In this document: positions 6,010-58,241 of the stretch, piece after piece
Layout of the letters: each line of letters opens with the position of its first letter
Numbering within the stretch: position 1 is the first letter of the stretch
Source: Scyliorhinus canicula
Taxonomy: Eukaryota
Assembly: GCF_902713615.1 (NCBI RefSeq)
Contig: NC_052147.1
Location: 254,420,886 to 254,484,885, forward strand
Direction: 5' to 3'
Length of the DNA: 64,000 bases
The notes under the pieces: model-generated
Told to the model about the DNA's origin: nothing
Databases searched by the model: none
The model's input: only the letters and a program-made list of their open reading frames with translations
Made by a program: the position numbers and the translations under genes

Positions 6010-6584
6010 GCCCAGCACAGTGGTTAGCACTGCTGCTTCACAGCTCCAGGGACCCGGATTCAATTCCGGCTTTGGGCGACTGTCTGTGTGGAGTTTGCTC
6101 TTTCTCCCTGTATCTGAGTGGATTTCCTCTGAGGGATCCGGTTTCCTCCCACAGTCCAAGGATGTGTAGGTTGGGTGGATTGGCCATGCTAAATTGCCCC
6201 TTAGTGTCCAGTGAGGTGCAGGTTAGGTGGATTGGCCAAAATAAATGTGTGGGGTTGCGTGGTTAGGACTGGGGTGTGGGCCTCAGTAGAGTCCTTTTTC
6301 GGAATATAGGTACATACTCCTTCTGCACAGTTGGGTCTTTGTGGATCTTCCACCTGTCTCACAGATTGTAGAATCCAAAATTAATAATATGAGAATCAGT
6401 CCAAAGATGTGCAGGTTAGGTGGATTGGCCGTGCTAAATTGCCCTTAGTGTTCAAAAAGGTTAAGTGGGGGTGACTGGGTTATGGGGATAGGGTAGAGAC
6501 TTGGGCTTGAGTAGGGTTCTCTTTGTAAGGGCCGGTGCAGACTCGATGGGCCGTGTGGCCTCCTTCTGCACTGTAAATTCTATG
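6010..6584 (+). mobile_element. HE1-like SINE followed by a second HE1 3' half
   Basis: Same V-domain and tail motifs as 5118-5449. Confidence 0.85.
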
Positions 6585-7790: not shown

Positions 7791-8030
7791 ATGGCACAGT
7801 GGTTAGCACTGCTGCCTCACAGTGCAAGGGACCCAGGTTCAATTCCGGCCTTGGGTGACTATCTGCGTGGAGTTTGTACATTCTCCCCATGTTTGCCTGA
7901 ATTTTCTACGGGTGTTCTGGTTTCCTCCCACAGTCCAAAGATGTGCAAGTTAAGTGGATTGTCCATGTTAACTCCCTCCTTAGTATCCAAAGATGTGTAG
8001 GTTAGGTTAAGGGGCTATTGGGATAGGGCG
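7791..8030 (+). mobile_element. HE1-like SINE (3' truncated)
   Basis: GGCACAGTGGTTAGCACTGCTGCCTCACAG head plus V-domain. Confidence 0.85.
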
Positions 8031-8258: not shown

Positions 8259-11200
8259 GTCAGACAGATTTGGTCTATTGCATTCGCTGCTCCCAATGTG
8301 GTCTCCTCTATATCGGAGAGACCAAACGCAGACTTTGTGATCGTTTTGCTGAGCACCTTTGGTCTGTGCTCATTCAGGATCCTGACCTCCCCGTTGCTTG
8401 CCATTTTTTTTTTATAAATGTTTTTTATTGAGTTTTCATATTTTATATATGACAAATTACAAATTATTAGAGAGAAAAAAAAAAGAAAACACAAAAATTT
8501 AACATGAATATTTCCAGGTAAGCATCTTCACAACAACAATTGTGGCCGCTCCCTTTAGCCAGCATACATATTTTACATTCCCCAATATGGCCGAGGCACA
8601 TGTTTATAGGCATTTATTTATAGTTTGGTTTTGGGCCTTGGCTTGCCATCAAACTCCCATAACAAGCCTGTACCCCCCCCCCCCCCCCTCCACCTTCCCC
8701 CGATTCCCGTCCATTTTCCCCTGATTCTTGACCACCCGACTATTCTTCCTCTTGTACGTTGGCCACAAACAGGTCCCGGAACAGTTGCATGAATGGCTCC
8801 CACGTTCTGTGGAAGCCGTCGTCCGACCCTCGGATGGTGAATTTGATTTTCTCCATTTGGAGAGATTCCGAGAGGTCGGACAGCCAGTCTGCAGCTCTGG
8901 GCGGTGCTGCTGACCACCAGCCAAACAGGATTCTACGGCGGGCGATCAGGGAGGCAAAGGCAAGGGCGTCCGCCCTCCTCCCCAGGAATAGATCTGGCTG
9001 GTCTGAAACCCCGAAGACCGCCACTATCGGGCATGGCTCCACCCTCACCCCCACCACTTTGGACATAGCCTCGAAGAAGGCTGTCCAGTACTCCACAAGT
9101 CTGGGGCAAGACCAGAACATGTGGGCATGGTTGGCCGGGCCTCTTTGGCACCGCTCACATCTGTCCTCCACCTCCGGGAAGAACCTACTCATACGGTTTC
9201 TCGTTAAGTGGGCTCTATGTACCACTTTTAGTTGCGTCAGGCTGAGCCTTGCGCACGTGGAGGTGGAGTTGACCCTATGCAGTGCTTCGCTCCAGAGTCC
9301 CCACCCTATCTCCATCCCCAGGTCGTCCTCCCATTTCCTTCTTGTTGCATCCAGTACGGTGTCGTCCCTATCTACCAGTCGGTCATACATGTCACTACAG
9401 TTCCCTTTCTCTAGGATACTTGCGTCCAGTAGGTCTTCCAGTAGTGTCTGTCGTGGCGGTTGTGGGTACGTCCTTGTCTCCTTTCGTAGGAAGTTTTTGA
9501 GCTGCAGGTACCGTAGCTCGTTCCCCCCAGCTAGCTGAAATTTCTCTGTCAGTTCGTCCAGTGTTGCGATCCTGTCGTCCGTGTATAGGTCCCTGACTGT
9601 CAGTGTCCCCCCGTCCTGCCTCCACCTTTTGAAGGTGGCGTCAGTCAGTGCTGGTTTGAACCTATGGTTGTTGCAGATGGGAGCCTTGCCCGACATTTTG
9701 TACAGGCCAAATTGCTGCCGCAGTTGGTTCCAGGATTGGAGGGTGGCTGTCACCACTGGGCTGCTGGAGTGTTTTTTGGGTGGGGATGGGAGTGCTGCCG
9801 TGGCGAGGGCCCGGAGGGAGGTTCCCATGCAGGAGGCCTCCTCCGCACGCACCCACTCGGCTTCTGGCTCCTGGATCCATCCCCTTACTCGCTCGGCTGT
9901 TGCCGCCCAGTGGTAGAATTGTAGATTCGGGAGGGCTAGCCCCCCCTGGATTTTGTTTTTTGTAGGACCTTCTTTGGGATCCTAGCATTTTTACCCCCCC
10001 ATACGAACGCCATGATAAGTTTGTCCAGCGCTTTGAAAAAGGCCTTGGGGATGTAGATCGGAATGGATCTAAACAGGAAGAGGAACCTGGGCAGTACGTT
10101 CATTTTGATCATCTGGACTCTCTCTGCGAGGGAGAGTGGGAGTGTGTTCCATCTTTGCAGGTCCTTTTTAACTTCCTCCGTCAGGCTGGTGAGGTTCCAT
10201 TTGTGGATTCCTTTCCAGTCATGGGCTATTTGGGTCCCCAGGTAGCGGAATTTATGTTGGGCTTGTTTGAACGGCAGCCCCTTTAGTGCTGCCCCCCCCC
10301 ACCTTGCGGGTGTACTGGGAAGATCTCACTTTTGCTCATGTTGTGTTTGTAGCCCGAGAAGACTCCAAACTCTTTCAGGAGCGCGATGATTCCGTCCATG
10401 CTGCTTTGTGGGTCCGAGATATAGAGGAGCAGATCATCCGCATGGAGTGAGACTCTGTGCTCTCTACGTCCCCTTCGGATCCCCCTCCAATTTTTTGCTG
10501 CCCTGAGCGCGATTGCTAGCGGTTTAATTGCTAGTGCGAACAGCAGCGATGACAGTGGGCATCCTTGTCTGGTTCCCCTGTGCAGCTGGAAGTATTGGGA
10601 GTTGGTATTGTTGGTCCGTACACTCGCCATGGGAGCATTGTACAGGAGCTTTACCCAAGCGGTGAACCCTGTTCCAAGCCCGAACCGCTCCAGTACCTCT
10701 ATGAGGTATTTCCATTCGACTCTGTCGAAGGCCTTTTCTGCGTCCAGGGAGATGATCACCTCTTGTGTTCTCTCCCCGGAGGGGGTCATTATCACGTTCA
10801 GCAGGCGCCTGATGTTCGCGGTAAGCTGTCTACCTTTGACGAAGCCCGTCTGGTCCTCTGTGACCACCTCAGGTACACAGTCTTCTAGCCCTTTGGCTAG
10901 GATTTTGGCCAGTATTTTGGCGTCTGCGTTCAGCAGGGATATGGGTCTGTTGCTTGCCACTTTAACAAAAGACCCTGCTCCCGTGCCGACATGTCAGTCC
11001 TTGGCCTGCTTCGATATTCCAGTGAAGCTCAACGCAAACTGGAGGAACAACATCTCATCTTCTGGTTAAGCACGCTACGGCCTTCCAGTCTCAACATCGA
11101 ATTCAAGAACTTCAGATGATTAGCTTCCACCCCACCTGACCCATTTGTTTTCATTGCATTTCATTTTAACTGTCTTTTACCATTTCTTTCTTTCGTAACA

Positions 11201-17428: not shown

Positions 17429-18654
17429 GGGCGGAATTCTCCCCCCCACCACACCGGGTGGGAGAATCGCGGGGGCGCCGCTCGAGTCCCACCAGGCCGC
17501 CCCGGCACCCGCACGCGATTCTCCCACCTCCCACCCCCTCAAACCGGCGCGGTGAGATTTACAGCTGGCCGCTGGGAGAATCGCCGCTCGCCGTTTGTAA
17601 TGGGCGAGTGGCGATTCTCCGGCCTGGATGGGCCGAGCGGTCTGCCCAACACGACAGGATCCCACCGGCGCCGTCCACACCTGATCTCTGCCGGCGGGAA
17701 CAGCGCGGGAACGCTGGGGGGGTGGCCTGTGGGGGGGGGGAGGGAGGGGGGATCCAGCACCGGGAGGGCGGTCAAAAGGGGTCTGGTCCGCGATCGGTGC
17801 CCATCGATCGGCGGGCCGGCCTCTCTGAAGGAGGACCTCCTTTCCTCCGCCTCCCCGCAAGATCACTCCGAAATTTGTTGCAGGGCGCCCGCAGGGAGGA
17901 CGGCAACCGCGCCTCCGACGCCGGAGTGAAACACTCCGGCATCGGGACTTTTAGGGCGCGATTCTCTGCTGCCGGGAAAAATCGTGAAGGCCGTCGTGAA
18001 CTCGGCCGAGTTTCACGACGGCCTCAGAGCCCGCTCCTCTCACCGAATCACCCCCACCCGGGGTGCTAGGAGCGGCGCTCCGTTATTCTCGGCCGCCGGG
18101 CCTTGACGCTTGCGCCAAGAATGACGCGACGGCGGCGCCTATGTGACGTCAGCCGCGCATGCGCAGGTTGGCCGGTCCAACCCGCGCATGCGCGGCTGAC
18201 GTCCCAACGGCTGACAGCTCGAACCCGCGCATGCGCGGTGGCTGTCTTTCCCCTCAGCCGTCCCGCAAGACGTGGCAGCTTGATCTTGCGGTGCGGCGGA
18301 GGGGAAATAGTGCGTCCGATTGAGACGCCGGCCCGACGATCGGTGGGCACCGATCGCGGGCCTCTCCCCTCCCGAGCACAGTCGTGGTGCTCATTCCCCA
18401 CCAGGCCCCCTACAAGCCCCAAAACGGTCATCTCATGCCGATTTCACGACGGTAGCGACCAGGTGCGGTTCCCGCCACCGTGCGTGAAACGGTCGCGAAC
18501 GGCAGGCCGCTCGGCCCATCCGGGTCGGAGAATCGCGCGAGTGGCGATTCTTCCAAGGGGGGGGTGGGAGAATCGCGGGGGGCGCCAGGGGGTCGTGAGA
18601 TTAGTCGGGGGACGAGAATCGCGCCCCAAGTCTCCCGATGGGAGAATCGCGCCC
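17429..18654. mobile_element. GC-rich MITE containing a nested related MITE (17954-18626)
   Basis: Outer ends GGGCGGAATTCTC / GAGAATCGCGCCC. Inner ends GGGCGCGATTCTC / GAGAATCGCGCCC, splitting the subterminal motif GGGACTT|AGTCTCC that is intact (reverse orientation) in the 44117 copy. Confidence 0.8.
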
Positions 18655-23457: not shown

Positions 23458-24479
23458 ATTTTTTATTTGTTTACGGGATGTTGGCATTGCAGGCTAGACC
23501 ATCATTTATTGTGCATCCAAAGTTGCTCTTGAGACAGTGGTGGTGAGCAGCCGTGTCTGGATTGATTGGTTGTTGAAGAGTAGAAATCAAGCGGGCTGCT
23601 TTGTCCTAGATGGTGTCAAGTCATTGAGTCTTGGAAAAAAAAATTAATTGGGTACTCTAAATCTATTTAAAAAAAGTCTCCTGAGTGTTTTTGGAGCGGC
23701 ACTCATCCAGACATGTGGAGAGTATTCCATTGCACTTCTGATTTGTGCCTTACAGGTGGTAGGCAGGCTTTGGGGAGTCAGGAGGTGAGTTACTCACCGC
23801 AGGATTCCTAGCCTTCTTGAACCGCTACAGTTCCTGAGCACCCACATCATCCACAGCGCTGGTAGAAAGGGAGTTCCAGGATCTTGACCAAGCGACAGTG
23901 AAGGGATGCAATATATTTACAAGTCGGAGTGGTGAGTGACTTTGAGGGGAACCTCCAGGTGGTGAGGTATCTGCTGCTCTTGTCCTTCTAGATGGTAGTG
24001 ATTGTGGGTTTAGAAGGTGATGCCTAAGGAACCTTGGTGAGTTTCTGCAGTGCATCTTGTAGATAGTACACACGGCTGCCATCGTTCGTCGGTGGTGAAG
24101 GAGGGATTGATTGGTTGTTGAAGAGTAGAAATCAAGCGGGCTGCTTTGTCCTAGATGGTGTCAAGTCATTGAGTCTTGGAAAAAAAAATTAATTGGGTAC
24201 TCTAAATCTATTTTAAAAAAGTCTCCTGAGTGTTTTTGGAGCGGCACTCATCCAGACATGTGGAGAGTATTCCATTGCACTTCTGATTTGTGCCTTACAG
24301 GTGGTAGGCAGGCTTTGGGGAGTCAGGAGGTGAGTTACTCACCGCAGGATTCCTAGCCTTTGGCCCGATATGGCTTGTACAGTTCAGTTTCTGGCCAACA
24401 GTAACTCCCAAGGTGTTGGTAGCAGGGGATTCAGTGATGGTAATGCCATTGTATGTCAACGGTCGATGGTTTCATCAAA

Positions 24480-26416: not shown

Positions 26417-27036
26417 GGGCTGGATTCTCCGATTCTGCGGATGTCCGCAGGATCCGTCTGGTCTTGCAACTAAAAAGTCGCCGCCGTTGCCACTCCGATG
26501 CTCCACCCGGTGGGGGGCTAGCAGTCGTGCCACGTAAAGCCCACCTGTCGATACGGCCGCAGAACGGCTGGGTCCATGGCCGCGCATGCGCACTCCGGCC
26601 GTATTGCCATACAACATGGCACAGCCGCGCAAAAACTGCCCCCTGTAACCTCCCTCGCCACCCCCGGACCACCCCCAACCAGTCCCTCCAGCTCCCGCCA
26701 AACCCCCCACCAGCAGAACGGCGCTGCCCCCCCCCCCCCCGACTGTTGCGCCACTGGACACAGTCCGCAGCTGCCACGCGAGGACCCCTAAAAGTGAGAG
26801 GACACGTGACTCACGCTGTCGGAGACTCAGCCCATCTGGGGCAGAGGTCCGAGGGAGGGCCTCAGGTGACGTACTGAGGCCGCCCCGTTGGTGTGCGGCA
26901 TACTCCACGAGTGCACCATTTTTCAGGGGGCGGAGCATCGGAAAAACGGCACCTCCCCCGATTCCGGCGTGGAAATGGATTCTCCGGTCGATCGCCATAC
27001 GCGATTTCGGAATCGCCGATCGGGGAATTCAGACCC
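26417..27036. mobile_element. GC-rich MITE inserted in CR1
   Basis: GGGCTGGATTCTCC ... GGGAATTCAGACCC ends. CR1 sequence resumes on both sides. Confidence 0.75.
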
Positions 27037-37340: not shown

Positions 37341-37740
37341 ATCTTCTTTGAGGTTTTGGACTATCTCTAGTCTTTGCTACATTGAGGATGAGCTCATCAG
37401 GACAGTTACTGAAAATGATAGCTTCCTTAGATGGAGCAAGGTTTTGTGGATATATACACCATATATACACCACACACTTTCACCAATGGTAGCATTTACT
37501 CACATATATCTAGTGCCAGGGAGAGAAATCATGGAGTTTACCTGTGTATGGGTCCCTTATTTCAAAGAACAAAGAACAAAGAAAAGTACAGCACAGGAAC
37601 AGGCCCTTCGATCCTCCAAGCCTGCGCCGACCATGCTGCCCGTCTAAACTAAAATCTTCTACACTTTCGGGGTCTGTATCCCTCTATTCCCATCTTATTC
37701 ATATATTTGTCAAGATGCCCTTAAACGTCACTATTGTCCC

Positions 37741-38004
37741 TGTGTTGTTCCTCGTGTCTTAATAAAGCTCGCAGTCTCAAGTGTGGAGAAGATGCTTTAT
37801 TGTGGGTTCGTTCAGTTTCCAGAGCTCGACCTAGAACTACCTTCCAGTGCTAACTACCAGCTTTGCTTGCTGTGTGTCCTGCTTCCCAGCCCCTGCTGTG
37901 AAGAGTGTCCTCACTTCCTGTCCTGATGTATTTATATGGCTCTCCCGTGCTCCCTCTAGTGGTCGCTCAGTTGTGTTGCATCTGGTTAACTTGTGATCAC
38001 CACA
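37741..38004 (-). repeat. 3' LTR (264 bp)
   Basis: Direct repeat of 41874-42137. Minus-strand TATAAAT and AATAAA present. Confidence 0.95.
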
Positions 38005-38020
38005 TCCCCCTTTTTCTCTT
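38005..38020 (-). promoter_or_regulatory. Polypurine tract
   Basis: Minus strand reads AAGAGAAAAAGGGGGA immediately before the TGTGGTG of the 3' LTR. Confidence 0.9.
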
Positions 38021-38452
38021 AACATATTTTCTTAACATCGTTAAAGAAAATTGTATATCCTGTCCCAGTGTATTTATAGCTCTCCCGCTCGTGTTTGCTC
38101 TGTTGTTTTTGTATCTGGTCAATCTACTATCACCACATCCCCCTCTTTCTCATTACATAGTTTCTGTACATCATTAAGGAAAATTATACAAAACAGTAAC
38201 TTATGATATGCGTATCTATACAAGTGATGATGCTATTGCCTTAGTTAACAAAGCCAATGTATTTATATGTCCAAACTTAATAAACACATTTATGAGTCCA
38301 AACTTGATGAATTTGTTCAGAGCTTTTTTTTTTTTCTTTTTGTTGTTGATGACGTGGTGATATTGATATTGCAAGTCCGCTGTGAATGTTGTTGGTGTTC
38401 CTTGTTATCTTAAGTACCCAATGCGTCATCCCGAGGTGTTTGCATGGTCACA

Positions 38453-41400
38453 TCACTGATGTTGACTGGCATGGACTTTTTTTTTGTGCTTGTGGTGTTG
38501 ATTTATTGTCTCATCCGCCTTGGATGCTGGTGTGCTTGCTTGTTCTGGAGCAGACGTGAGTTTGTGCGATTCGTTGTCATCCCATGACATGTTTGTAGTC
38601 TTGTTATCGTTTTGCAGTGTGCTGTGGCATCGTCCATCATGTGCCAAGTAGTGCCATTGTGTACAAGTCGTTGTTTCATTGCTGTTGTTTCTGTCGTTCC
38701 TGTTTTTGTTGTTTCCGTTGCCGTACTTGTCGCTGTTTTTGTCGTTTCCGTCTTTGTTGTTGTCGCTATCTTTGCTCCTGACTTTGTTGTGTTTGTTGCC
38801 ATTCTTGTTGTTTCTGCCTCTGTCGTTGTCGCTATCTTTGTGCCTGACGTTGTTGTTTGTCTTGTTGCGTGTCATGTTGCTTTTATTCTTGCTGTTGTCG
38901 TTCTCGTTTCTGCTGTGCTTCTTGCTATTGTTGTTTGTCGTGTCGCGCTTCATATTGCTTTTCTTCTTGCTGTTGTCGTTCGCGTTTCTGCTGTGCTTCT
39001 TGCTATTGTTGTTGGTCTTGTCGCGCTTCATGTTGTTTTTGTTCTTGCTGTGTTTCTTTTGACTTTTGTTTTTCTTGTTATACTCTATGAGTGTCCCGAG
39101 TGGATAATTTGAGTCATTGAGCATTCCGTCTCGCGAGTGGTGCGAATGATCTGATGTTGCATCGGTGCAGGTGACATCAATCAGTTGTGGAGAATTGGAT
39201 TCCGCATCTTTGCTTTCTTGGTGCTCGTCTTCCGGAGTCAAAGTCTTCTTGATTACATTTGACGCGGTGTCTGTGGACTCTCGGCGCTCCTCTTCTGGAG
39301 TCCAAATCTGCATGATTTCAGCTGACGTGGTTTCTCTAGACTCTTGGTGCTCCGCTTCTGGAGTTAAAATCTTCATGATTTCTGTTGATGTTATCTCACT
39401 GGACTCCAGGTGCTCCTCTTCTGGAGTCAAAATCGGCATGGTGTCTTTTTGTTTGATGTCTCTGGACTCCAGGTGCTCCTCTTCTGGAGTCAGAATCTGC
39501 ATGGTTTCTTTCGGCATTGTCTCTGTGGACTCCAGGTGCTCCTCTTCTGGAGTCAAAATCTGCATGTTTTCTTTTGGCGTTGTCTCTCTGGGCTCCAGGT
39601 GCTCCTCTTCTGGAGTCAAAATCTGCATGTTTTCTGTCGGCATCGTCTCTCTGGACTGTTGGGTGGCCCGACTCTGTGCTTCTGTACAGACAAGCTGAGA
39701 ACTGTCAGTCTCCCTGTGATCCTGTACGTCGAGTGCGAGCACCTTGTCACTGTTTTCGCTCTGTGCTTCGGTACAGACAAGCTGAGAACTGTCAGTCTCA
39801 CTGTGATCCTGTACGTTGAGTGTGATCACCTTGTCACTGTCTTCGCATGCAGTGGGCAGAGGTGCATTGTCTTCTTCTTGTTCCTGTGAGCGTGTTGGAC
39901 TTTCATAGTCTGCTTTTTCTTCTTGTTCCTGTGAGCGTGTTGGACTTTCATAGTCTGCTCTTTCTTCTTGTTCCTGTGAGCTTGGTAGACTTTCATAGTC
40001 TGCTTGCGGTTGCTCAGGTACAGCGGGTTTACCTTCATGGTCTTGTTCATGCTTGGTGTCCGCCCGGGAGTGTTTGCTTGCATCCCTGTTGGCGTCTTTC
40101 ATCACTCGCACTGTGGAGCCTGTCATCGCTCGCTCCGTGGAGTCTTCCTGTGCTCTCTGTGTGGCGTCGTCTTCATCTTGGGTATTGCTGTCATCCAATG
40201 TATCGACGAGCTGCCATGGCACCATGGTGTTGGATTCATCCACCATGAGTAGAGTCGTGTTGAGCTTTGCAACGGTGTCGCTGATGCTGTGATCAGCATG
40301 TCCAAATAACTCCTCCATGTCTGAGTAGTATTCTTTGAAACCCATTTCATCTTCGTTGGCTTCTTCTACCACGAGTTGATTCGTGTTGAACTTTGCGACC
40401 GTGTCGCTGATGCTGTGATAAGCATATCCGACTGACTCAGCTGTGTCTGAGTAGTATTCTCCGAAAACCAAATCATCCTGGTTGGATTCTTCTACCACGA
40501 GTTGATTCGTGTTGAACTTTGCGACCGTGTCGCTGATGCTGTGATAAGCATATCCGACTGACTCAGCCATGTCTGAGTAGTATTCTTTGAAAACCAAATC
40601 ATCTTGGTTGGATTCATCTACCACGAGTTGGTTCGTGTTGTGCTTTGCGACCGTGTCGCTGATGCTGTGATAAGCATATCCGACTGACCCAGTCAGGTCT
40701 GAGAGGTAATCGTCGAAAAACAAATCATCTTTTGTTGTTTCGGAATTCTTTTTGTTCGCTTCACTGTGTGTGGTGAAGGCAGCTTTTTCCAAGGTTTTGT
40801 GCAAGTTGTTTTTCACTGTTGGTTTAAGTTCAGGCGTTTTTCTGTGTTCTGAGGCAAGAAAATTTGGTTTTACCACTTTAAGTGTCTTGTTTTCAATTTT
40901 CGGGCATTTCCCTTTTAAGTGGGCGTGGCCAGGATTCTCAGACGTCATGACGTCACGCGTAGGAACGACTTGCACATGCGCAAATCGGCTTTCTTTCCTT
41001 GTGCGGTTCGGTGTCCATTGCGCATGCGCGGCTTGCGCATGCGCATGACGGTCCGCGACGAAGACTTTTTTTGACTGCGCATGCGCGGTTTGCGCATGCG
41101 CATAACGATCGGCGCCGCGATCTTTTGTAAACTGCGCATGCGCGACTTCCGGTTCCGGCGCATGCGCAACTTCCGGTTCCGGCGCATGCGCAACTTCCGG
41201 TTCCGGCGCATGCGCAGACGCGATTTGTAGTTCTTTGCTTACCAGAGACTGCAAAATGTGCTCCGACGCCATTTTATCGCGGATTTCAGCGTTTTTTCTT
41301 TCTAAAAGTTGTAAGTTACCTTTTCTTTCCGATCTGGACTGGATTTCAGCGTTTTGGCTTTGTGAAAAATTCATGTTATTTCTTCTTTTTGATCTGTACT

Positions 41401-41806
41401 GTGCATTCGCGATTTCCTGATCTTTTTGTGATTTTTTAAGTCTTGCATCACTCAGTCTCTGTGCAGGTTGGACTGTGAGCATGCCTTGCTGTTCAAATTT
41501 CTCACAGTACTCTTCAAATTTGTTTAGTAACGTTTGTAAGCTGTTCCTGTCTTCACCTTTTGAGTGTTTAAGTCCATTATACACTTTCTTATTGACAGGC
41601 CCTTCGATGAGAATTGCTATTTTAATTTTGTCTGAGGCGTCTGCTACATCATTAGCTATGAGATAAAAATCGAACATTTGTTTGAACCTTTTCCAGACAT
41701 TTATTACATTACCAGTCGTGTCCAGCTGAGGTGGGTATCCATGCCACATCCTCGAATTAGCGATGTCTTCCCCAGTCAAATGTCCAGTAGGAGATTTCCA
41801 TGCCAT
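38453..41806 (-). CDS. 1117-aa Gag-like N-terminus fused to a tandem-repeat, low-complexity tail
   Basis: Uninterrupted ORF. Residues ~25-105 (PPQLDTTGNV..WKRFKQMFDFYLIA..SDKIKIAIL..LLNKFEEYC) resemble the Ty3/Gypsy Gag capsid N-terminus. No protease, RT, RNase H or integrase motifs are visible. Confidence 0.8.
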   Translation of the reverse strand: MAWKSPTGHLTGEDIANSRMWHGYPPQLDTTGNVINVWKRFKQMFDFYLIANDVADASDKIKIAILIEGPVNKKVYNGLKHSKGEDRNSLQTLLNKFEEYCEKFEQQGMLTVQPAQRLSDARLKKSQKDQEIANAQYRSKRRNNMNFSQSQNAEIQSRSERKGNLQLLERKNAEIRDKMASEHILQSLVSKELQIASAHAPEPEVAHAPEPEVAHAPEPEVAHAQFTKDRGADRYAHAQTAHAQSKKVFVADRHAHAQAAHAQWTPNRTRKESRFAHVQVVPTRDVMTSENPGHAHLKGKCPKIENKTLKVVKPNFLASEHRKTPELKPTVKNNLHKTLEKAAFTTHSEANKKNSETTKDDLFFDDYLSDLTGSVGYAYHSISDTVAKHNTNQLVVDESNQDDLVFKEYYSDMAESVGYAYHSISDTVAKFNTNQLVVEESNQDDLVFGEYYSDTAESVGYAYHSISDTVAKFNTNQLVVEEANEDEMGFKEYYSDMEELFGHADHSISDTVAKLNTTLLMVDESNTMVPWQLVDTLDDSNTQDEDDATQRAQEDSTERAMTGSTVRVMKDANRDASKHSRADTKHEQDHEGKPAVPEQPQADYESLPSSQEQEERADYESPTRSQEQEEKADYESPTRSQEQEEDNAPLPTACEDSDKVITLNVQDHSETDSSQLVCTEAQSENSDKVLALDVQDHRETDSSQLVCTEAQSRATQQSRETMPTENMQILTPEEEHLEPRETTPKENMQILTPEEEHLESTETMPKETMQILTPEEEHLESRDIKQKDTMPILTPEEEHLESSEITSTEIMKILTPEAEHQESRETTSAEIMQIWTPEEERRESTDTASNVIKKTLTPEDEHQESKDAESNSPQLIDVTCTDATSDHSHHSRDGMLNDSNYPLGTLIEYNKKNKSQKKHSKNKNNMKRDKTNNNSKKHSRNANDNSKKKSNMKRDTTNNNSKKHSRNENDNSKNKSNMTRNKTNNNVRHKDSDNDRGRNNKNGNKHNKVRSKDSDNNKDGNDKNSDKYGNGNNKNRNDRNNSNETTTCTQWHYLAHDGRCHSTLQNDNKTTNMSWDDNESHKLTSAPEQASTPASKADETINQHHKHKKKVHASQHQ

Positions 41807-41858
41807 TTTGTGCTTTCTGTATCTGCAGCTGAGTTGTCCTGTCGTAAGCGTCTGAAAT

Positions 41859-41873
41859 CACTCCTAGGTACCA
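41859..41873 (-). promoter_or_regulatory. Primer-binding site, tRNA-Leu(UAA)-like
   Basis: Minus strand TGGTACCTAGGAGTG against the complement of the vertebrate tRNA-Leu(UAA) 3' end (TGGTACCAGGAGTG), with one extra T. Confidence 0.7.
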
Positions 41874-42137
41874 TGTGTTGTTCCTCGTGTCTTAATAAAG
41901 CTCGCAGTCTCAAGTGTGGAGAAGATGCTTTATTGTGGGTTCGTTCAGTTTCCAGAGCTCGACCTAGAACTACCTTCCAGTGCTAACTACCAGCTTTGCT
42001 TGCTGTGTGTCCTGCTTCCCAGCCCCTGCTGTGAAGAGTGTCCTCACTTCCTGTCCTGATGTATTTATATGGCTCTCCCGTGCTCCCTCTAGTGGTCGCT
42101 CAGTTGTGTTGCATCTGGTTAACTTGTGATCACCACA
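41874..42137 (-). repeat. 5' LTR (264 bp)
   Basis: Direct repeat of 37741-38004, followed by the PBS. Confidence 0.95.
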
Positions 42138-43249
42138 GTCCCTGCTTCCACCACCTCCTCCGGCAGCGAGTTCCAGGCACCCACTACCCTTTGTGTGAAA
42201 AACGTGCCTCGTACATCTCCTCTAAACTTTGCCCCTTGCACCTTAAACCTATGCCCCCTAGTAATGGACCCCTCTCCCGTGGGAAAAAGTCTCTGACTAT
42301 CCACCCTGTCTATGCCCCTCATAATTTTGTAGACCTCTATCAGGTCACCCCTCAACCTCCGTCGTTACAGTGAGAACAAACCAAGTTTATTCAACCTCTC
42401 CTCATAGCTAATGCCCTCCATACCAGGCAACATCCTGGTAAATCTTTTCTGCACCCTCTCTAAAGCCTCCACATCTTTCTGGCAGTGTGGCGATCAGAAT
42501 TGAACACTATACTCCAAGTGTGGCCTCACTAAGGTTCTATACAGGTGCAACATGACTTGCCAATTTTTATACTCAATGCCCTGGCCAATGAAGGCAAGCA
42601 TGCTGTACGCCTTCTTGACTACCTTTTCCACCTGTGTTGCCCCTTTCAGTGACTTGTGGACCTGTACACCTAGATCTCCCTGACTGTCAATACTCTTGAG
42701 GGTTCTACCATTCATTATATAATCGCCACCTGTATTAGACCTTCCAAAATGCATTATCTCACATTTGTCCGGATTAAACTCCATCTGCCATCTCTCTGCC
42801 CAAGTCTCCATACGATCTAAATCCTGCTGTATCCTCTGACAGTCCTCATCGCTCTTCACAATTCCACCAACATTTGTGTTGTCCACAAACTTCCTAATCA
42901 GACCAGTTACATTTTCCTCCGAACAGCAAAAGTCCCAGCACTGATCCCTGCGGAACACCACAAGTCACATCCCTCCAATCAGAAAAGCACCCTTCCATTG
43001 CTACTCTCTGCCTTCTATGACCTAGCCAGTTCTGTATCCATCTTGCCAGCTCACCTCTGATCCCGTAGGACTTCACCTTTTGTACCAGTCTGCCATGAGG
43101 GACATTGTCAAAGGCCTTACTGAAGTCCATATCGACAACATCCACTGCCCTATCTGCATCAATCATCTTTGTGACCTCCTCGAAAAACTTTCTTAGCCTC
43201 GACAGCTTCTGTTGACAAGCTTGGCAATGTGCTTTGAGTCCTACGGAAT

Positions 43250-44116: not shown

Positions 44117-44556
44117 GGGCTGGATTCTCTGTTCTGGAGACTAAGTCCCCACGCCGGCGTGTAATCGGTGGCGTTTTATGCCAGAAAAATTGGCGCAAAA
44201 TGGCCACCGAAACGGCCTGGAGAATTGCCGGTCCCGTGGTCGCGCATGCGCACCTCAGTGGCCTGCGGAGGCCGTGCCATGCTTCATGGCGGATACTGCT
44301 CGCGGACCCGGCCCGCAAAAATAGTGCTCCCTTCGGCCAGCTCACGTGCCCCGGACCCCCCCCCCCCCACCATGGTGCCCCCAGCCCCGAATATATCCCC
44401 CCTGCCCGCGAATCGGCTCTCCCCCGACTGTGGCGGTGCTGGACTGAGTCCACCGCCGCCACGCTGACTTCCCGACGGGTCAGACCACACATGACCCATG
44501 CCGCTTTTCAGGGGGCAGAGCATCGGAAGTGGCTTCGGGATTGGGGATTCCAGCCC
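44117..44556. mobile_element. GC-rich MITE with 3-bp TSD
   Basis: GGGCTGGATTCTC ... GGGATTCCAGCCC. ATG on both sides (44114-44116 and 44557-44559). Confidence 0.8.
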
Positions 44557-49134: not shown

Positions 49135-49945
49135 ATTCTAATTGTGCACAATTCTGGTCACCACACTACCAGAAGGATGTGGAGGCTTTGGAGAGGGTGC
49201 AGAGGAGGTTTACCAGGATGTAGCCTGGTCTGGGGGGTATCAGCTATGCGGAGAGGCTGAATAGACTCGGACTGTTTTCATTAGAACAACAAAGGTTGAG
49301 GGGTGACCTGATAGAGGTCTACAAGATTATGAGGCGCATGGATATAGTGGATGGGCAGGCACTCTTTCCCAGAGTGGAGGGGTCAGTCACCAGGGGGCAT
49401 AGGTTTAAGGTCCATGGGTCAAGGTTTGGAAGAGATGTGCGAAGCACATTTTTTACACAGAGGGTGGTGAGTGGCTGGAAGGCGCTGCCAGGGGAGGTTG
49501 TGGAAGCAGATACATTAGTGGTGTTCAAAAGGCATCTCGACAATACATGGATAGGATGGGGATAGAGGGATACGGCACTAGGAAGTGCTGAGGGTTTTGG
49601 CCAAGGGTGGTGATGCACGATCAATAACTCCCGAAGCGAGATTGTAGGACAATTGAAGGCTTTATTGAACTAGATGTTTCCCCCAGCAGCGTAGGTGCAG
49701 AATGCAGCAGCTTGGGAAACACAGACTCTTATACTCCGCCTTACTGGCCGGAATCAGCAGGCAGGCTTCACCAGTGATCTTACAGAATCAGGTACCTCCA
49801 ACACCAATGATCTTACAGCATCAGGTATCTCCACCTAGGTACCGTAATACCCCTAATACCAACTACCACAGGTGGTATCATGACCGGTACAGGCTTGGAG
49901 GGCCGAAGGGCCTGGACTGTGCTGAATTGTTCTTTGTTCTTTGTT
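49135..49945 (+). mobile_element. CR1 3' fragment split by a solo LTR
   Basis: ORF 49296..49565 RGDLIEVYKIMRRMD..TRGHRFKV..FFTQRVV. (TTGTTCT)n tail. Confidence 0.85.
49611..49870 (-). mobile_element. Solo LTR (260 bp) with 5-bp TSD
   Basis: TG..CA termini. GGTGG at 49606-49610 and 49871-49875. Minus-strand AATAAA and TATAA. Confidence 0.85.
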
Positions 49946-53879: not shown

Positions 53880-56800
53880 AATTAGTTGAGGTCATAATGT
53901 GGTTCATTCATTCACGGGAAGGCAGTGCAGGGGTCCCCTGCGGTCATCTTCCTCCAAAACAGGTGTACTGTTTTGGATACCGTTGAGGGAGATGGCTCAC
54001 CAGTGGAAGGCAGCAGTAGCCAGGTTCATGGCACTGTGGCTGGCTCTGCTGCAGAGGAGGGCAGGAAAAAGAGTGGTACAGTTGTAGTGATAGGGGATTT
54101 GATTGTAAAGGGAGTAGACAGGTGTTTCTGTGGACACAAACAAGACTCCAGGGAGGCATGTTGCCTCCCAGGTGCAAGGGTCCGGGATGTCTCAGAGCGG
54201 CTGCACAACATTCTAAAGGGGAGGGTGAACAGCCAGCTGTTGTGGTGCATATAGGCACCACCAATGTAGGAAAAAACGGGATGGGGTCCCACATGCTGAA
54301 TTTAGGGAGTTAGGAGATAAACTAAAAAGTAGGCCCTCAAAGGTAGTAATCTTAGGATTGCTACCAGTTCCATGTGCTAGTCAGAATTGGAATGACAGGA
54401 TAGGCAGGATGAATGCATGGCTTGAGAGATGGTGCAGGAGGGAGGGATTCAGATTTTTGGGACATTGGAACCAGTTCTGGGAGAGGTGGGACCATTACAA
54501 ATTGGACGGTCTACACCTGGGCAGGACTGGAACCAATGTCCTAGGGGGGTTGTTTGCTTGCGATGTTGGGGAGGGTTTAAACTAATGTGACAGAGGAATG
54601 GGAACCGATACAGGAAGTTAGAGGGTAGCAAAGGGGGGACAGAAACAAAAGCTAGTAAGGAGCAAAGTGGAAGGCAGAGAAAAGGATTGAACTGCCCAGT
54701 ATGGCAGGGGGGCGGGAACCAGAGCAGTAGTTCAGCAGGTAAAATAACTGAGGGAGAGCTACAGCCTAAAGCCAATAAGATTAAGAGGAAGAGCAGGCAG
54801 GGAGTGGTTGGTGAACGCAGCAGGGTTGGTGGGCTGAAGTGCATTAGTTTCAATGCAAGGAGTATTTCAGGTAAGACAGATGAACTTAGAGCTTGGGTTA
54901 GTATGTGGAATTAAGGTGTTGTTACTATTACAGAAACTTGGTTGAAAGAGGGACAGGATTGGCAACTAAACATTCCAGGATAGAGGGGGATGCAAAAGGG
55001 GTGGGGGAGTTGCATTATTTTTTATTGGTTAAGGAGAAAATCAAAGCTGTGCTGAAGTGGGACACCTTGGAGAGTTCAGGCAGCGACGCAATCTGGGTAG
55101 AGCTCAGTAATAGGAAGGGGGCTGTCACAGTGTTGGGGGTTTGCTACAGACCTAACAGCCAGCGGGAGATAGAGAAGCAGATATGCAGACAGATCTTGAA
55201 AAGATGCAAATACAATAGGGTTGTCGTGGTGGGTGATTTTAACTTTCCCTATATTGACTGGGACACACTTACTGCAACAGGCATGGATGGAGCAGAATTT
55301 GTATTGAGTGTCCAGCAGGGTTTCTTGAAGCAATATGTAAATAGCCCAACCCGAGAAGGGGCCATATTAGGCCTGGTGCTGGGAAATGAGCGCGGCCAGA
55401 TGATCGAAGTTTCAGTGGGAGATCATTTCGGGGGAACAGTGATTATAATTCTGTAAGTGTTAAGCTGCTTATGGAAAAGGGCAAGAGTGGTCCTCAGGTA
55501 AAGGTGTTAGACTGGGGGAAGGCTAATGACAACAGCTTTAGGCAGGATCTGGAGAGTGTTGACTGGGCGAGGCTGTTTGAGGGAAAATCAACATCCGGCA
55601 TGTGGGAGGCTTTCAAATGTCAGTTGATTAGGATTCAGGACCGGCATGTATCTGTGAGGACGAAAGATAAGGGCGGCAAGTGTAGGAAACCCTGGATAAC
55701 GAGGGATATCATGAATCTTGTCAAAAAGAAAAAGGAAGCATTCATAAGGTCCAAAAGGCTTATGACGATGAAGCCCTTGAAGAATATAAAGCAAGTAGGA
55801 AGGAACTCAAGGTAGGAGTTAGGAAGGCGAAAAGGGGTCATGAAATATCATTGGCAAACAGGATTAAGGAAAATCCTAAGGTGTTTTATACATATTTAAA
55901 GAGCAAGAGGGTAGCCAGAGGAAAGGTTGGTCCATTCAAGGATATTGGAGGGAATCTATGTATGGTACCAGAGAAAATGGGAGAGATACTAAATGAATAC
56001 TTTGCCTCAGTATTCACCAAAGAGAAGGACTTGGTGGATGAGGAGTACAGGGTCGAGTGTGTAGATATTCTGAGTCATGTTGATACTAATAAAGAGGAGG
56101 TGTTGGGCATCTTAAAAAGCATTAAAATATATAAGTCCTCAGGGCCTGATGGGATCTACCCTAGAATACTGTGGAAGGCAAGGGAGGAAATTGCTGGGTT
56201 CTTGACAGTAATCTTTGTATCCACATTGGCTACAGGTGAAGTTCCAGAAGACTGGAGAGTAGCCAACGTTATTCCATTGTTAAGAAGAGCAGCAGGGATA
56301 ATCCAGGAAATGATAGGCCGGTGAGCCTTACGTCAGTGTTAGGGAAATTTTTGGAAAAGGTTATTAGAGATAGGATTTACTCACATTTGGAAACAAATAG
56401 GCTTATTAGTGATGGGCAGCATGGTTTTGTGAAGAGGAGGTCGTGCCTCACTAATTTGATCGAGTTTTTCGAGGAAGTGACAAAGATGGTAGATGAGGGA
56501 AAGCCTTTGACAAAGTGCCTCATGGTAGACTGGTACAAAAGGTGAAGTCACATGGAATCAGAGGAGAGCTCGCAAGTTGGATACAGAACTGGCTTGGGCA
56601 CAGAAGACAGAGGGTAGCAGCAGAAGGGTGGTTTTCTGAATGGAAGGCAGTGAGTCGCGGCATTCCACAGGGATCAGTCCTGGGGCCTTTGTTGTTCATA
56701 GTGTATATAAATGATTTGGAAGAAAATGTAGCTGAACGACACAAAAATTGGTGGAGTTGCGGATAGTGTAGAGGATTGTCAGAGGATACAGCAGGATATA

Positions 56801-57097
56801 AACTGGTTGGAGTCTTGGGCGGAGAAATGACAGATGGAGTTTAATCTGGACAAGTGTGAGGTAATGCACTTTGGAAGGTCCAATGCATGTAGGAATTACA
56901 CAATAAATGGTAGAACTCTTGCGAGTACTTGCAGGCCGAGAGATCTGGGCGTGCATGTCCACCGATCACTGAAAGTGGCAAACCATGTGGATAAGGTGGT
57001 CAAGAAGGAAAATGGCATGCTGGCCTTCATCGATCGGGGCAATGAATATAAAAATTTGCAAGAAATATTGCAGCTGTGCAGGACCTTAGTTAGGCCT

Positions 57098-57128
<31 letters not shown>

Positions 57129-57648
57129 CACACTACCAGAAAGATGTGGATGCTTTGGAGAGCGCACATAAGTGGCTTACTAGGATATTGCCTGGTATGG
57201 AGGGCATTAGCTATGAGGAGAGGTTAAATAACCTTGATCTGTTCTCCCTGAAACGACGGAAGTTGAGAGGCGACCTGATAGAGGTCTACAAGATTATGAG
57301 TGGCATGGACAGAGTGGATAGTTAGATGCTCTTTCCTAGGGTAGAAGAGTCAAGTACTAGGGGACATAGGTTTAAAGTGCGTGGGGAAAAGTTTAGAACG
57401 GTTGTGCGAGGCAAGTTTTTTTACACAGAGGGAAGTAAATGTATATATATACTGCCTTTGGAGGTGGTGGGAGCAGATACGAAAGCGGCATTTAAGACAT
57501 CGAGGCAAATATATGAGTAGAATGGGAATTGAAGGACACGGACTCCATAAGTGCATACGGTTTTAGTTTAGGCAGGTATCATGCTCGGTGCAGGCTTGGA
57601 GGGCCGAAAGGCTTGTTCCTGTGCTGTATTGTTCTTTGTTCTTTATTC
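53880..57648 (+). mobile_element. Near full-length decayed CR1 (HER1-like): ORF1 esterase, ORF2 APE and RT
   Basis: ORF1 SGNH-like blocks VVVIGDLIV, CLPGARVRDV, VVHIGTTNV, DGLHL. APE motifs FNARSI, VVVGDFNFP, PTREGAIL. RT motifs KSSGPDGIYP, GIPQGSVLGPLLF, LVRPHLEYCVQFW. Many frameshifts and stops. Confidence 0.92.
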
Positions 57649-58241
57649 TTTGCAAACAAAAGGAATATATTCAAGCCTCTTTTTTGAATTACTCCAGAAC
57701 TTCGGGAGCCTGTAGTTCCCTGTTGCTTTCACCATGGCTATGCCATGGCCAATTAGATTTCACTTTCCAAGCTTTTTTTCCCGTAGTGTAAATTGTTGTA
57801 ATCATTTGAATTTTTCATTCTTGCATTTGGCCTGATGGGTGTCAGATGGAAATTTTGAGCAACGTGTCTCTCTCTTCAGCAATATTCAATTCTGCACTCC
57901 CAAGTTTCTGTTTAAAGCCTAGTAATTAATAGATCTTGAGTTAATTCAAGCTAGTCTCAATAATAGTGAAGCATTTTAAAGGTTCCATTTTTTTTCCAAT
58001 GCATTAAGCTGTTCATTATCAATTGGGCTGAATTTAACTTGAACACATGTTAATGTAAGCCTACTGGTGACAATAAAGATTATTATTATTATCAAATGAA
58101 CTAAAGAACCCCAGTAGCCAGGGGTTGGAAGGGGTGAAATTTAATGGATGGCCAATCCGATATAGCTTGCATTATTTTGCCATCCAAATGAATTCCTATC
58201 CTTAACTAATATGTAGCTGCCCTTTAGGGGCATCCTTCTAT

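Follow-up and report, generated by a model that had tools for sequence, protein, structure and literature searches.

A young pol-less LTR retrotransposon, probably of Ty3/Gypsy origin, with an apparently remodelled Gag extended by in-frame repeats

Introduction

Among non-autonomous LTR elements, TR-GAG elements keep a GAG ORF without the pol enzymes, are presumed to be trans-mobilised and are called 'semi-autonomous' (definition cited in PMC13570524), while LARD elements are defined as non-autonomous, longer than 4 kb and non-coding in their interior (PMC13570524). The TR-GAG literature that we found deals with plants throughout, in line with the first-pass annotation of the present locus, which had regarded such elements as described mainly from plants. 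In mammals and birds, deleted ERV/LTR derivatives such as ETn/MusD, VL30 and the IAP deletion forms spread in trans, and none known to us has half a capsid joined to long coding repeats. Ty1 p22, Fv1 and enJS56A1 Gag are examples of truncated or defective Gag proteins that restrict their relatives.

The element described here resembles TR-GAG in part, having LTRs, a PBS-like site, a PPT and a retained gag-derived ORF with all pol enzymes absent. In contrast to TR-GAG, its Gag is partial, with only the capsid N-lobe kept and the C-lobe and functional zinc knuckles gone, its ORF is lengthened by in-frame repeats totalling about 800 aa, its length of 4.4 kb equals that of a small autonomous element, and it carries a 'K02A2.6-like' Ty3/Gypsy Gag in an animal host genome rich in LINE-like repeats. 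With LARD elements it shares the status of a non-autonomous LTR element above 4 kb (4397 bp) whose interior is not pol, but the LARD interior is non-coding, whereas here 87% of it is one open frame. ETn/MusD, VL30 and the IAP deletion forms may be comparable, being LTR elements of vertebrates that have no pol functions and depend on helpers, although they derive from retroviruses and are either non-coding or gag-pol fusions.

Results

Termini, insertion site and age

The window, a 64-kb stretch of DNA, carries on its minus strand an LTR retrotransposon of 4397 bp at 37741-42137 (Table 1). Its two direct LTRs end in TG..CA and differ at 0 of 264 positions, a short TSD flanks the whole, and a PBS-like site and a PPT each lie beside their LTR, as is typical of LTR retrotransposons. 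In the sense orientation, which is that of the ORF, TATAAA occurs at position 69 of the LTR and AATAAA farther on, at position 204. The element has a full cis set for reverse transcription and integration, consisting of LTRs with TATA and polyA signals, a PBS-like site and a PPT. No tRNA gene that could point to the primer for the putative PBS was found in the 64-kb window, and the LTR sequence does not recur elsewhere in it. The element sits in a LINE-like repeat, the flanking parts of which contain RVT_1, and another copy of this repeat at ~57420-57490 (opposite strand) crosses the junction uninterrupted with a single pentamer, providing a paralogous empty site. The first-pass annotation had claimed 264-bp LTRs without differences, a GTCCC TSD, a PBS and a PPT, all of which were confirmed, the PBS as a PBS-like sequence. 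Since the LTRs are identical and the CpG o/e of the interior (0.88) exceeds that of the flanks (0.35-0.45), the insertion is young. An older tandem duplicate of the region around the PPT, which lies outside the ORF, has ~80% identity to 37916-38055.

Table 1. Features of the element, with positions in the window
Feature	Position	Strand	Description
TSD GTCCC, left copy	37736..37740	.	
3' LTR	37741..38004	-	264 bp; sense start TGTGG, end ACACA
PPT	38005..38020	-	AAGAGAAAAAGGGGGA; purine run immediately upstream of 3' LTR
Older internal tandem duplicate	38056..38188	-	~45 nt, second PPT (GAGAAAGAGGGGGA) and first ~83 nt of U3 including TATAAATACA
Single ORF, 1117 aa	38453..41806	-	stop included; ATG with A at -3 and G at +4
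K/N-rich basic block, aa 906-1045	38672..39091	-	net +24, pI 10.4; 78-, 66- and 45-bp repeats
Acidic arrays	39220..40005	-	3 x 45 bp (39872-40005), 2 x 87 bp (39672-39846), 7 x 63 bp (39220-39657)
4 x 126-bp repeat	40229..40731	-	42-aa acidic units with aromatic residues
Degenerate first zinc knuckle, aa 289-303	40898..40942	-	SENPGHAHLKGKCPK; collinear second HSP with P0006 residues 230-239
CpG-rich block	41020..41216	.	8 perfect GCGCATGCGC palindromes (NRF1 consensus) and 3 ACTTCCGG (ETS-like)
Basic polar linker, aa 107-200	41207..41488	-	net +7, pI 10.3; contains 60-bp repeat
Gag capsid N-lobe, aa 24-103	41498..41737	-	four predicted helices
PBS-like 18-mer	41856..41873	-	TGGTACCTAGGAGTGATT; starts with TGG, adjoins 5' LTR
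5' LTR	41874..42137	-	264 bp, 100% identical to 3' LTR
TSD GTCCC, right copy	42138..42142	.	

A single ORF without pol

The ORF occupies 3354 of the 3869 internal bases, in agreement with the earlier claim of one stop-free frame over about 87% of the interior, and is the longest in the window (runner-up, 528 aa). The remaining five frames of the interior contain 37-73 stops each, with no open stretch above 182 aa. An autonomous element would encode RT and IN; in the ORF, Pfam searches found neither RVT nor RNase H nor rve domains, and tblastn of the whole window with four Gag-Pol relatives, three of them complete and one partial, gave matches at the Gag N-lobe only. The element therefore encodes neither protease nor reverse transcriptase, RNase H or integrase, and the absence of pol noted in the first-pass annotation stands. 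A second copy of the element was found neither in the 64-kb window nor in protein collections or metagenome scans.

A capsid N-lobe and a knuckle remnant

The earlier impression of a Gag-like start to the ORF (~105 aa) is confirmed by homology for aa 24-103. These residues gave 305 phmmer matches, which fall at protein N-termini and include complete PR-RT-RH-IN polyproteins, and an hhalign comparison of the ORF with 'K02A2.6-like' Ty3/Gypsy Gag-Pol (probability 99.1, E 1.2e-18) was confined to the same segment. In the AF2 model this part has a pLDDT of 92-97 and corresponds to the N-terminal lobe of the capsid, that is, to helices 1-4 of 9. In the N-lobe, 17 of 21 columns conserved across the family have been retained, while beyond C101 just 1 of 21 is kept. 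A fold search with the model of the relatives' Gag matched capsids of retroviruses and retrotransposons and nothing else (HIV CA, PNMA2, PEG10, dArc1, Arc, and MLV; probability 0.9-1.0), and the search with the ORF's own model returned nothing significant, its top match being the MOAP1 CA-like domain at E 0.58. The assignment to Ty3/Gypsy is based on homology of the Gag N-lobe to PR-RT-RH-IN polyproteins, as the element has no pol for an RT/IN phylogeny.

The place of the relatives' capsid C-lobe is occupied by the linker of aa 107-200, predicted to form a single long helix; the C-lobe itself is missing from the ORF protein. Farther downstream, the string GHAHLKGKCPK, rightly suspected of being a knuckle remnant, is collinear with the relatives' first zinc knuckle; it has the spacing of C-X2-C-G-X2-H-X4-C-P, but S and P stand in place of the first two Cys, and it forms a small hairpin in the structure model. 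No intact CCHC motif is present in the ORF. Ty3/Gypsy Gag combines a two-lobed capsid with a CCHC nucleocapsid; here, the N-lobe stands alone and CCHC is missing. Autonomous 'K02A2.6-like' Ty3/Gypsy elements (e.g. P0010 and P0120) share with the present element the homologous Gag N-lobe (37-48% identity), the collinear knuckle, and the 5-bp TSD and TG..CA LTR ends that the superfamily predicts, but they differ in possessing a capsid with both lobes, two CCHC knuckles, PR, RT, RNase H and IN, all of which the present element lacks. Taken as a protein, the ORF appears to be a remodelled Gag with an intact capsid N-lobe, no C-lobe, a knuckle minus two cysteines and ~800 aa of in-frame repeats.

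Repeats that keep the frame

Downstream of the Gag part, the ORF consists of eight tandem-repeat arrays, predicted to be disordered and acidic and ending in the K/N-rich block, much as the first-pass annotation had described (acidic repeats with a basic C-terminus after them). About 90% of the whole protein is predicted to be disordered and is of low complexity, and its non-Gag part has no homologue among the 5.8 billion proteins searched.

The periods of all eight independent arrays in the ORF (24, 57, 60, 126, 45, 87, 63, and 78) are divisible by 3, the chance of which is (1/3)^8 = 1.5e-4; this holds for only two of nine arrays outside the element, and the sole tandem duplication of the element outside the ORF has a period of ~133, not divisible by 3. 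Some 700 non-redundant codons are free of stops, compared with one stop per 18-35 codons in the other frames. Because the repeat units have diverged by 2-25% while the LTRs have diverged by 0%, the frame was open long before the present insertion. These observations bear on the idea that the element is a LARD-like non-coding derivative, whose ORF would be an unselected remnant of a recent rearrangement, too young to have decayed. Its size of 4.4 kb fits LARD, decay after so young an insertion is not expected, and the repeats lack clear amino-acid constraint; nevertheless, eight separate frame-preserving expansions with units since diverged by up to ~25%, together with the long stop-free coding history that predates the insertion, make this origin improbable.

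As the frame stayed open throughout the origin and divergence of the repeats, its openness mattered to the replicating lineage. The residues are a different matter. Between adjacent repeat units, dN/dS is 0.61 in frame, compared with 0.73 and 0.77 when either wrong frame is read, so that the frame was kept open with no clear constraint on the amino acids. Zero stops across at least 66 inferred substitutions is only weakly unusual (p 0.05-0.09), which counts against the main interpretation. Of the earlier interpretation, a young, complete, pol-less element with a true Gag fragment is upheld, but its repeat units show no clear amino-acid constraint. Such a pattern would also be expected if the ORF were open for RNA-level reasons, with ribosome transit shielding the genomic RNA from nonsense-mediated decay or aiding its export or stability, and with a protein that has no role in assembly. 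The largely disordered, low-complexity product and the short 3' UTR, with the stop ~430 nt ahead of the PPT, fit this explanation as well, whereas the confidently folded N-lobe with its conserved residues would be unneeded for RNA shielding alone, and LARD, TRIM and similar non-coding elements spread without an ORF (PMC13570524). We regard it as somewhat unlikely.

A CpG-rich motif block inside the ORF

The CpG-rich block, with a CpG o/e of 1.74, is laid out as 57-bp and 24-bp in-frame repeats encoding AHA/APEPEV, and its palindromes were assigned by the published NRF1 consensus (PMC10810270). Perfect transcription-factor consensus sites that are at the same time coding tandem repeats point to a possible dual use of the sequence, and the NRF1/ETS-motif array may serve as an internal enhancer. 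Such a block is also akin to a housekeeping promoter, and Gag-derived host genes exist, with Arc, PNMA and PEG10 among the fold matches of the relatives, so that domestication of a Gag as a host gene, or capture of part of a host gene between LTRs, was considered. However, the identical LTRs, TSD, PBS-like site and PPT denote recent retrotransposition of the entire unit, the non-Gag part lacks any homologue in the protein search, and the uninterrupted ORF is situated in a LINE-like repeat; a host gene is thus extremely improbable.

Discussion

We consider it probable that the element is a young non-autonomous LTR retrotransposon from Ty3/Gypsy with a 'K02A2.6-like' Gag, of the gag-retaining kind and mobilised in trans. 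Having no copying enzymes of its own, it would need the machinery of another element for movement, and since the relatives of its Gag are Gag-Pol proteins of Ty3/Gypsy that include PR-RT-RH-IN, it is naturally read as a Gypsy parasite. Packaging, copying and integration of its RNA would fall to proteins that an autonomous relative supplies from another site in the genome.

What the ORF product contributes is a more tentative matter. It is possible, though we lean somewhat against it, that the N-lobe joins helper capsomers, that the basic segments hold the element's own RNA and that the acidic repeats are a spacer. By its N-lobe the ORF protein would enter the capsomers of the helper, while the basic segments would retain the protein on the RNA from which it was translated and so bias packaging towards the parasite; the acidic repeats would then act as a spacer free of constraint. 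The basic parts of the ORF protein yielded no RNA-binding motif. For an N-lobe without a C-lobe, poisoning of assembly is as plausible as joining.

The ORF product could also antagonise the helper, in that an N-lobe without C-lobe would enter capsomers and block closure of the lattice. Only one capsid lobe of two is present, the large acidic extension could hinder assembly sterically, and Ty1 p22 and Fv1 are likewise partial capsid proteins potentially able to interact with a relative's full-length Gag. Those proteins oppose transposition, whereas the present one is encoded within a mobile unit that itself just transposed. Its mobilisation signals are intact and its insertion is recent, and as the element depends on working helper particles, a strong inhibitor would halt its own spread; moreover, it lies between identical LTRs with no host-gene context. 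Antagonism therefore has little chance of being the explanation.

Returning to trans-mobilisation, its most far-reaching form, which we find doubtful, is that of a semi-autonomous animal (probably vertebrate) Ty3/Gypsy parasite, in which the N-lobe and ~1000 aa of disordered repeats, first acidic and then basic, would be needed in cis for entry of the RNA into helper particles, the K/N block would replace the nucleocapsid, and the repeats would double as an NRF1/ETS enhancer array driving expression from inside the ORF.

If sister copies prove to be broken, the element would be one more deletion derivative. Gag-retaining non-autonomous LTR elements have been documented almost only in plants, and the mechanism by which such parasites compete for helper particles is not understood. 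Since one capsid lobe has been kept, the nucleocapsid fingers have been lost and ~1000 repeat codons have been held in frame, a young animal example of this kind would amount to a natural dissection of the capsid contacts that suffice for hitch-hiking.

Structure and age of the element

The 4397-bp element on the minus strand is a real feature: its two LTRs, which end in TG..CA, show no differences at any position, and GTCCC stands on either side of it. It interrupts an RVT_1-bearing, LINE-like repeat that has further copies in the window, and when a paralogous copy was aligned across the junction, the left flank ran continuously into the right flank with one pentamer only. Because this paralogous empty site holds a single pentamer, the target duplication and clean insertion proposed in the first-pass annotation are verified; its identical LTRs are confirmed as well. 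The PBS and polypurine tract that it described were likewise found adjoining the 5' and 3' LTR, respectively, and the LTR, read in sense, has a normal U3-R-U5 layout, with TATAAA at position 69 and AATAAA at position 204; the element has every cis sequence that is required. We take the PBS to resemble the 3' end of tRNA-Leu(UAA) plus one extra base, which is a lead rather than a result, and no tRNA gene was found within the window.

The insertion is recent. Zero differences over 264 bp bound the LTR divergence at ~1.1% (95%), and at an assumed rate of 1e-9 per site per year we infer an insertion age of roughly less than 6 My. The CpG observed/expected ratio is 0.88 in the element interior, compared with 0.35-0.45 in the flanks and 0.48 in the window, which is in keeping with recent insertion into a genome that depletes CpG. 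No further copy of the LTR sequence occurs elsewhere in the 64-kb window. An older tandem duplicate, comprising ~45 nt, a polypurine tract and, with its TATA box, the initial ~83 nt of U3, sits upstream of the polypurine tract just inside the 3' LTR, and supplies a second polypurine tract and a second promoter-like piece.

The window consists largely of RVT_1-bearing, LINE-like copies and fragments. It also holds a near-exact 257-bp direct repeat inside another repeat. This was rejected as a TRIM, being without TG..CA ends, and may have arisen by local duplication very recently or through an error of assembly. Two direct repeats of 214 bp could be the LTRs of a small, old LTR element.

Coordinates of the element, its parts and other repeats in the window
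Feature	Position	Strand	Remarks
5' LTR	41874-42137	minus	264 bp
PBS-like sequence		minus	TGGTACCTAGGAGTGATT, immediately after 5' LTR
ORF	41806..38453	minus	1117 aa, 87% of 3869-bp interior
tblastn match of Gag-Pol relatives	41501-41734
NRF1/ETS block	41020-41216		~200 bp, inside ORF
Tandem duplicate	38056-38188		~80% identical to 37916-38055
Polypurine tract		minus	AAGAGAAAAAGGGGGA, directly before 3' LTR
3' LTR	37741-38004	minus	264 bp
LINE-like copies/fragments	27-1613, 10283-10960, 42131-43166, 49141-49520, 56500-57655		RVT_1-bearing
214-bp direct repeat	6015-6228, 7794-8007		80% identity, 1.8 kb apart
257-bp direct repeat	23559-23815, 24104-24360		near-exact, 545 bp apart
Other GCGCATGCGC sites	18155-18236, 26582-26591, 44242-44251		unrelated GC-rich repeats

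A single ORF without pol

The ATG of the ORF has A at -3 and G at +4, the remaining five interior frames contain 37-73 stops each (longest open stretch 182 aa), and the ORF is the longest in the window, twofold over the next (528 aa, at the window start), which bears out the earlier description of one stop-free frame over about 87% of the interior. Pfam searches of the whole ORF and of three pieces gave no pol domain, the sole match being a non-significant Phi29 SSB, and tblastn of the whole window with Gag-Pol relatives (three complete, one partial) and two Gag fragments matched at one place only, within the ORF. Pol domains in any frame, which the first-pass annotation had named as evidence against its reading, were thus revealed neither by Pfam (ORF) nor by tblastn (whole window), and the element, having no enzymes, is therefore non-autonomous. 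Beyond aa 103, homology was detected neither to pol nor to the C-lobe of the capsid, and the only Rfam match is snoRNA-like and below threshold.

The N-terminus is half of a Gag capsid

When 1.84 billion representatives were searched exhaustively by phmmer with aa 1-125, 305 matches had E <= 1e-3. The top two, P0001 and P0002, were discarded as spurious and repeat-driven, one being a translated tandem repeat and the other a bacterial repeat protein; all subsequent matches align ORF residues ~25-103 with target residues ~7-87, at the extreme N-terminus. The long targets are Ty3/Gypsy polyproteins with the order protease, RVT_1, RNase H, integrase zinc domain and rve; those with names are 'K02A2.6-like' proteins (pseudoscorpion), and others are unnamed proteins from a sea spider and beetles. 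These relatives share a common architecture, with W at ~20, an RD..G motif at ~134 and two CCHC knuckles at ~205-250. A profile of eleven relatives' Gags matched ORF aa 1-340 with probability 99.1 and E 1.2e-18, confined to aa 24-103, so that the suggestion that the first ~105 aa look like Gag is substantiated by both phmmer and profile alignment. Aligned with 41 relatives, the ORF agrees at 17 of the 21 columns that are >=80% conserved up to C101, and at only 1 of 21 beyond it. Searching PDB sequences with aa 1-140 yielded no significant match, and the profile of Gag relatives gave only a weak retroviral Gag match and nucleocapsid-knuckle matches against PDB sequences.

The closest genuine phmmer match, P0003, is 45% identical to the Gag N-lobe and comes from a 2094-bp contig (locus L001, Logan SRR9716013), where a 97-aa ORF, followed by a stop and a 47-aa piece, lies downstream of a 441-aa ORF; this locus is a broken gag and uninformative on element structure.

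The AlphaFold model of aa 1-280 of the relative P0006 (42-row alignment, pLDDT 85) has nine helices and then the knuckles, and Foldseek matched it in the PDB to retroviral or retrotransposon capsids only (HIV-1 CA, PNMA2, PEG10 CA-CTD, dArc1, Arc, MLV), with probabilities of 0.9-1.0 and E-values of only about 1e-2. The model of ORF aa 1-340 (pLDDT 73) had no significant Foldseek match; it contains four confident helices at 34-106 that correspond to helices 1-4 of P0006, followed by a long helix (114-198), a helix at 220-262 and a small hairpin at 286-297. A coiled coil at aa 114-198 was set aside, as the segment is polar and basic and misaligned relatives among the input rows may account for its high pLDDT. 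Only helices 1-4 of the nine are matched; the ORF has thus kept the N-terminal lobe of the capsid and lost the C-terminal one.

P0027 matches P0006 at 70% identity over residues 1-93 and then passes directly to the knuckles, at the breakpoint of the ORF. Both P0027 and P0021, from other organisms, have the Gag N-lobe fused directly to CCHC knuckles, the C-lobe missing and the boundary after YC.P.KN; P0027 retains protease and RT. This lobe loss could reflect a deletion derivative or a gene-model artefact.

The ORF has no CCHC motif, in line with the first-pass annotation, which had allowed at most a remnant at GHAHLKGKCPK. BLASTP against P0006 gave a second collinear match, ORF 293-302 (GHAHLKGKCP) with P0006 230-239 (GFEHVKGKCP), the first knuckle of P0006, and the ORF stretch SENPGHAHLKGKCPK has the exact C-X2-C-G-X2-H-X4-C-P spacing, with the first two cysteines changed to S and P. 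Because the match is collinear and the spacing exact, we regard the knuckle remnant as real.

In-frame repeats and the open frame

Tandem Repeats Finder placed 11 of the 19 arrays of the window inside the ORF. The eight independent arrays there, with periods of 24, 57, 60, 126, 45, 87, 63 and 78 (66/45 overlapping), all have periods divisible by 3 (chance (1/3)^8 = 1.5e-4), against only 2 of 9 arrays outside the element, and the duplication that the element carries beyond its ORF has a period of ~133. As the repeat units are 77-98% identical and the LTRs identical, the expansions are much older than the insertion, and the frame was kept open throughout. At least 66 substitutions between units created no stops (p 0.05-0.09, weak). 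A weaker alternative would take this ORF for a functionless leftover.

The acidic repeat region and following basic part that had been described are present (aa 373-905, net -86; aa 906-1045, K/N-rich, net +24, pI 10.4), and charge-hydropathy analysis finds the N-lobe alone folded-like; the 42-aa units are borderline, and some structure in them could exist. Between adjacent repeat units dN/dS was 0.61 in the true frame and 0.73 and 0.77 in the wrong frames, showing no clear amino-acid constraint. Conservation can be demonstrated for the open frame and for the residues of the N-lobe, but not for those of the repeats. The main rival explanation holds that translation of the element RNA alone matters and the protein itself does not.

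Within the ORF, a CpG-island-like block (o/e 1.74, GC 0.59) is translated in frame as AHA/APEPEV repeats. It contains three ACTTCCGG motifs, ETS-type cores, interleaved with eight perfect GCGCATGCGC palindromes, where window shuffles predict 0; the whole window has 13, again with 0 expected. GCGCATGCGC is the NRF1 consensus (PMC10810270). The block may serve as an internal enhancer or represent a piece of a captured promoter.

Relation to known elements and possible mobilisation

Word-indexed searches of 5.8 billion proteins with region 1-140 of the full ORF, the whole ORF and aa 1-200 alone found nothing, and the exact ORF is absent from a 15-billion-protein collection. Metagenome scans for protein patterns and the exact LTR-PBS junction were empty, as expected for an animal element, and no other family members appeared in the protein or metagenome collections searched. 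TR-GAG elements, LTR elements that kept a gag ORF and lost the pol enzymes (PMC13570524), are the closest named category, as a gag ORF is kept and the enzymes are lost in both; none outside plants was found in the literature searched. The element agrees with LARDs in size but differs in coding status, and it is set apart by its half capsid, its lack of a working knuckle and the great length of its in-frame repeat extension.

We propose that an autonomous Ty3/Gypsy relative would mobilise the element in trans. A weaker rival makes the ORF product an inhibitor of this presumed helper. Under mobilisation in trans, the product would enter the helper capsomers via its conserved N-lobe, and its basic parts may keep the protein on its own RNA.
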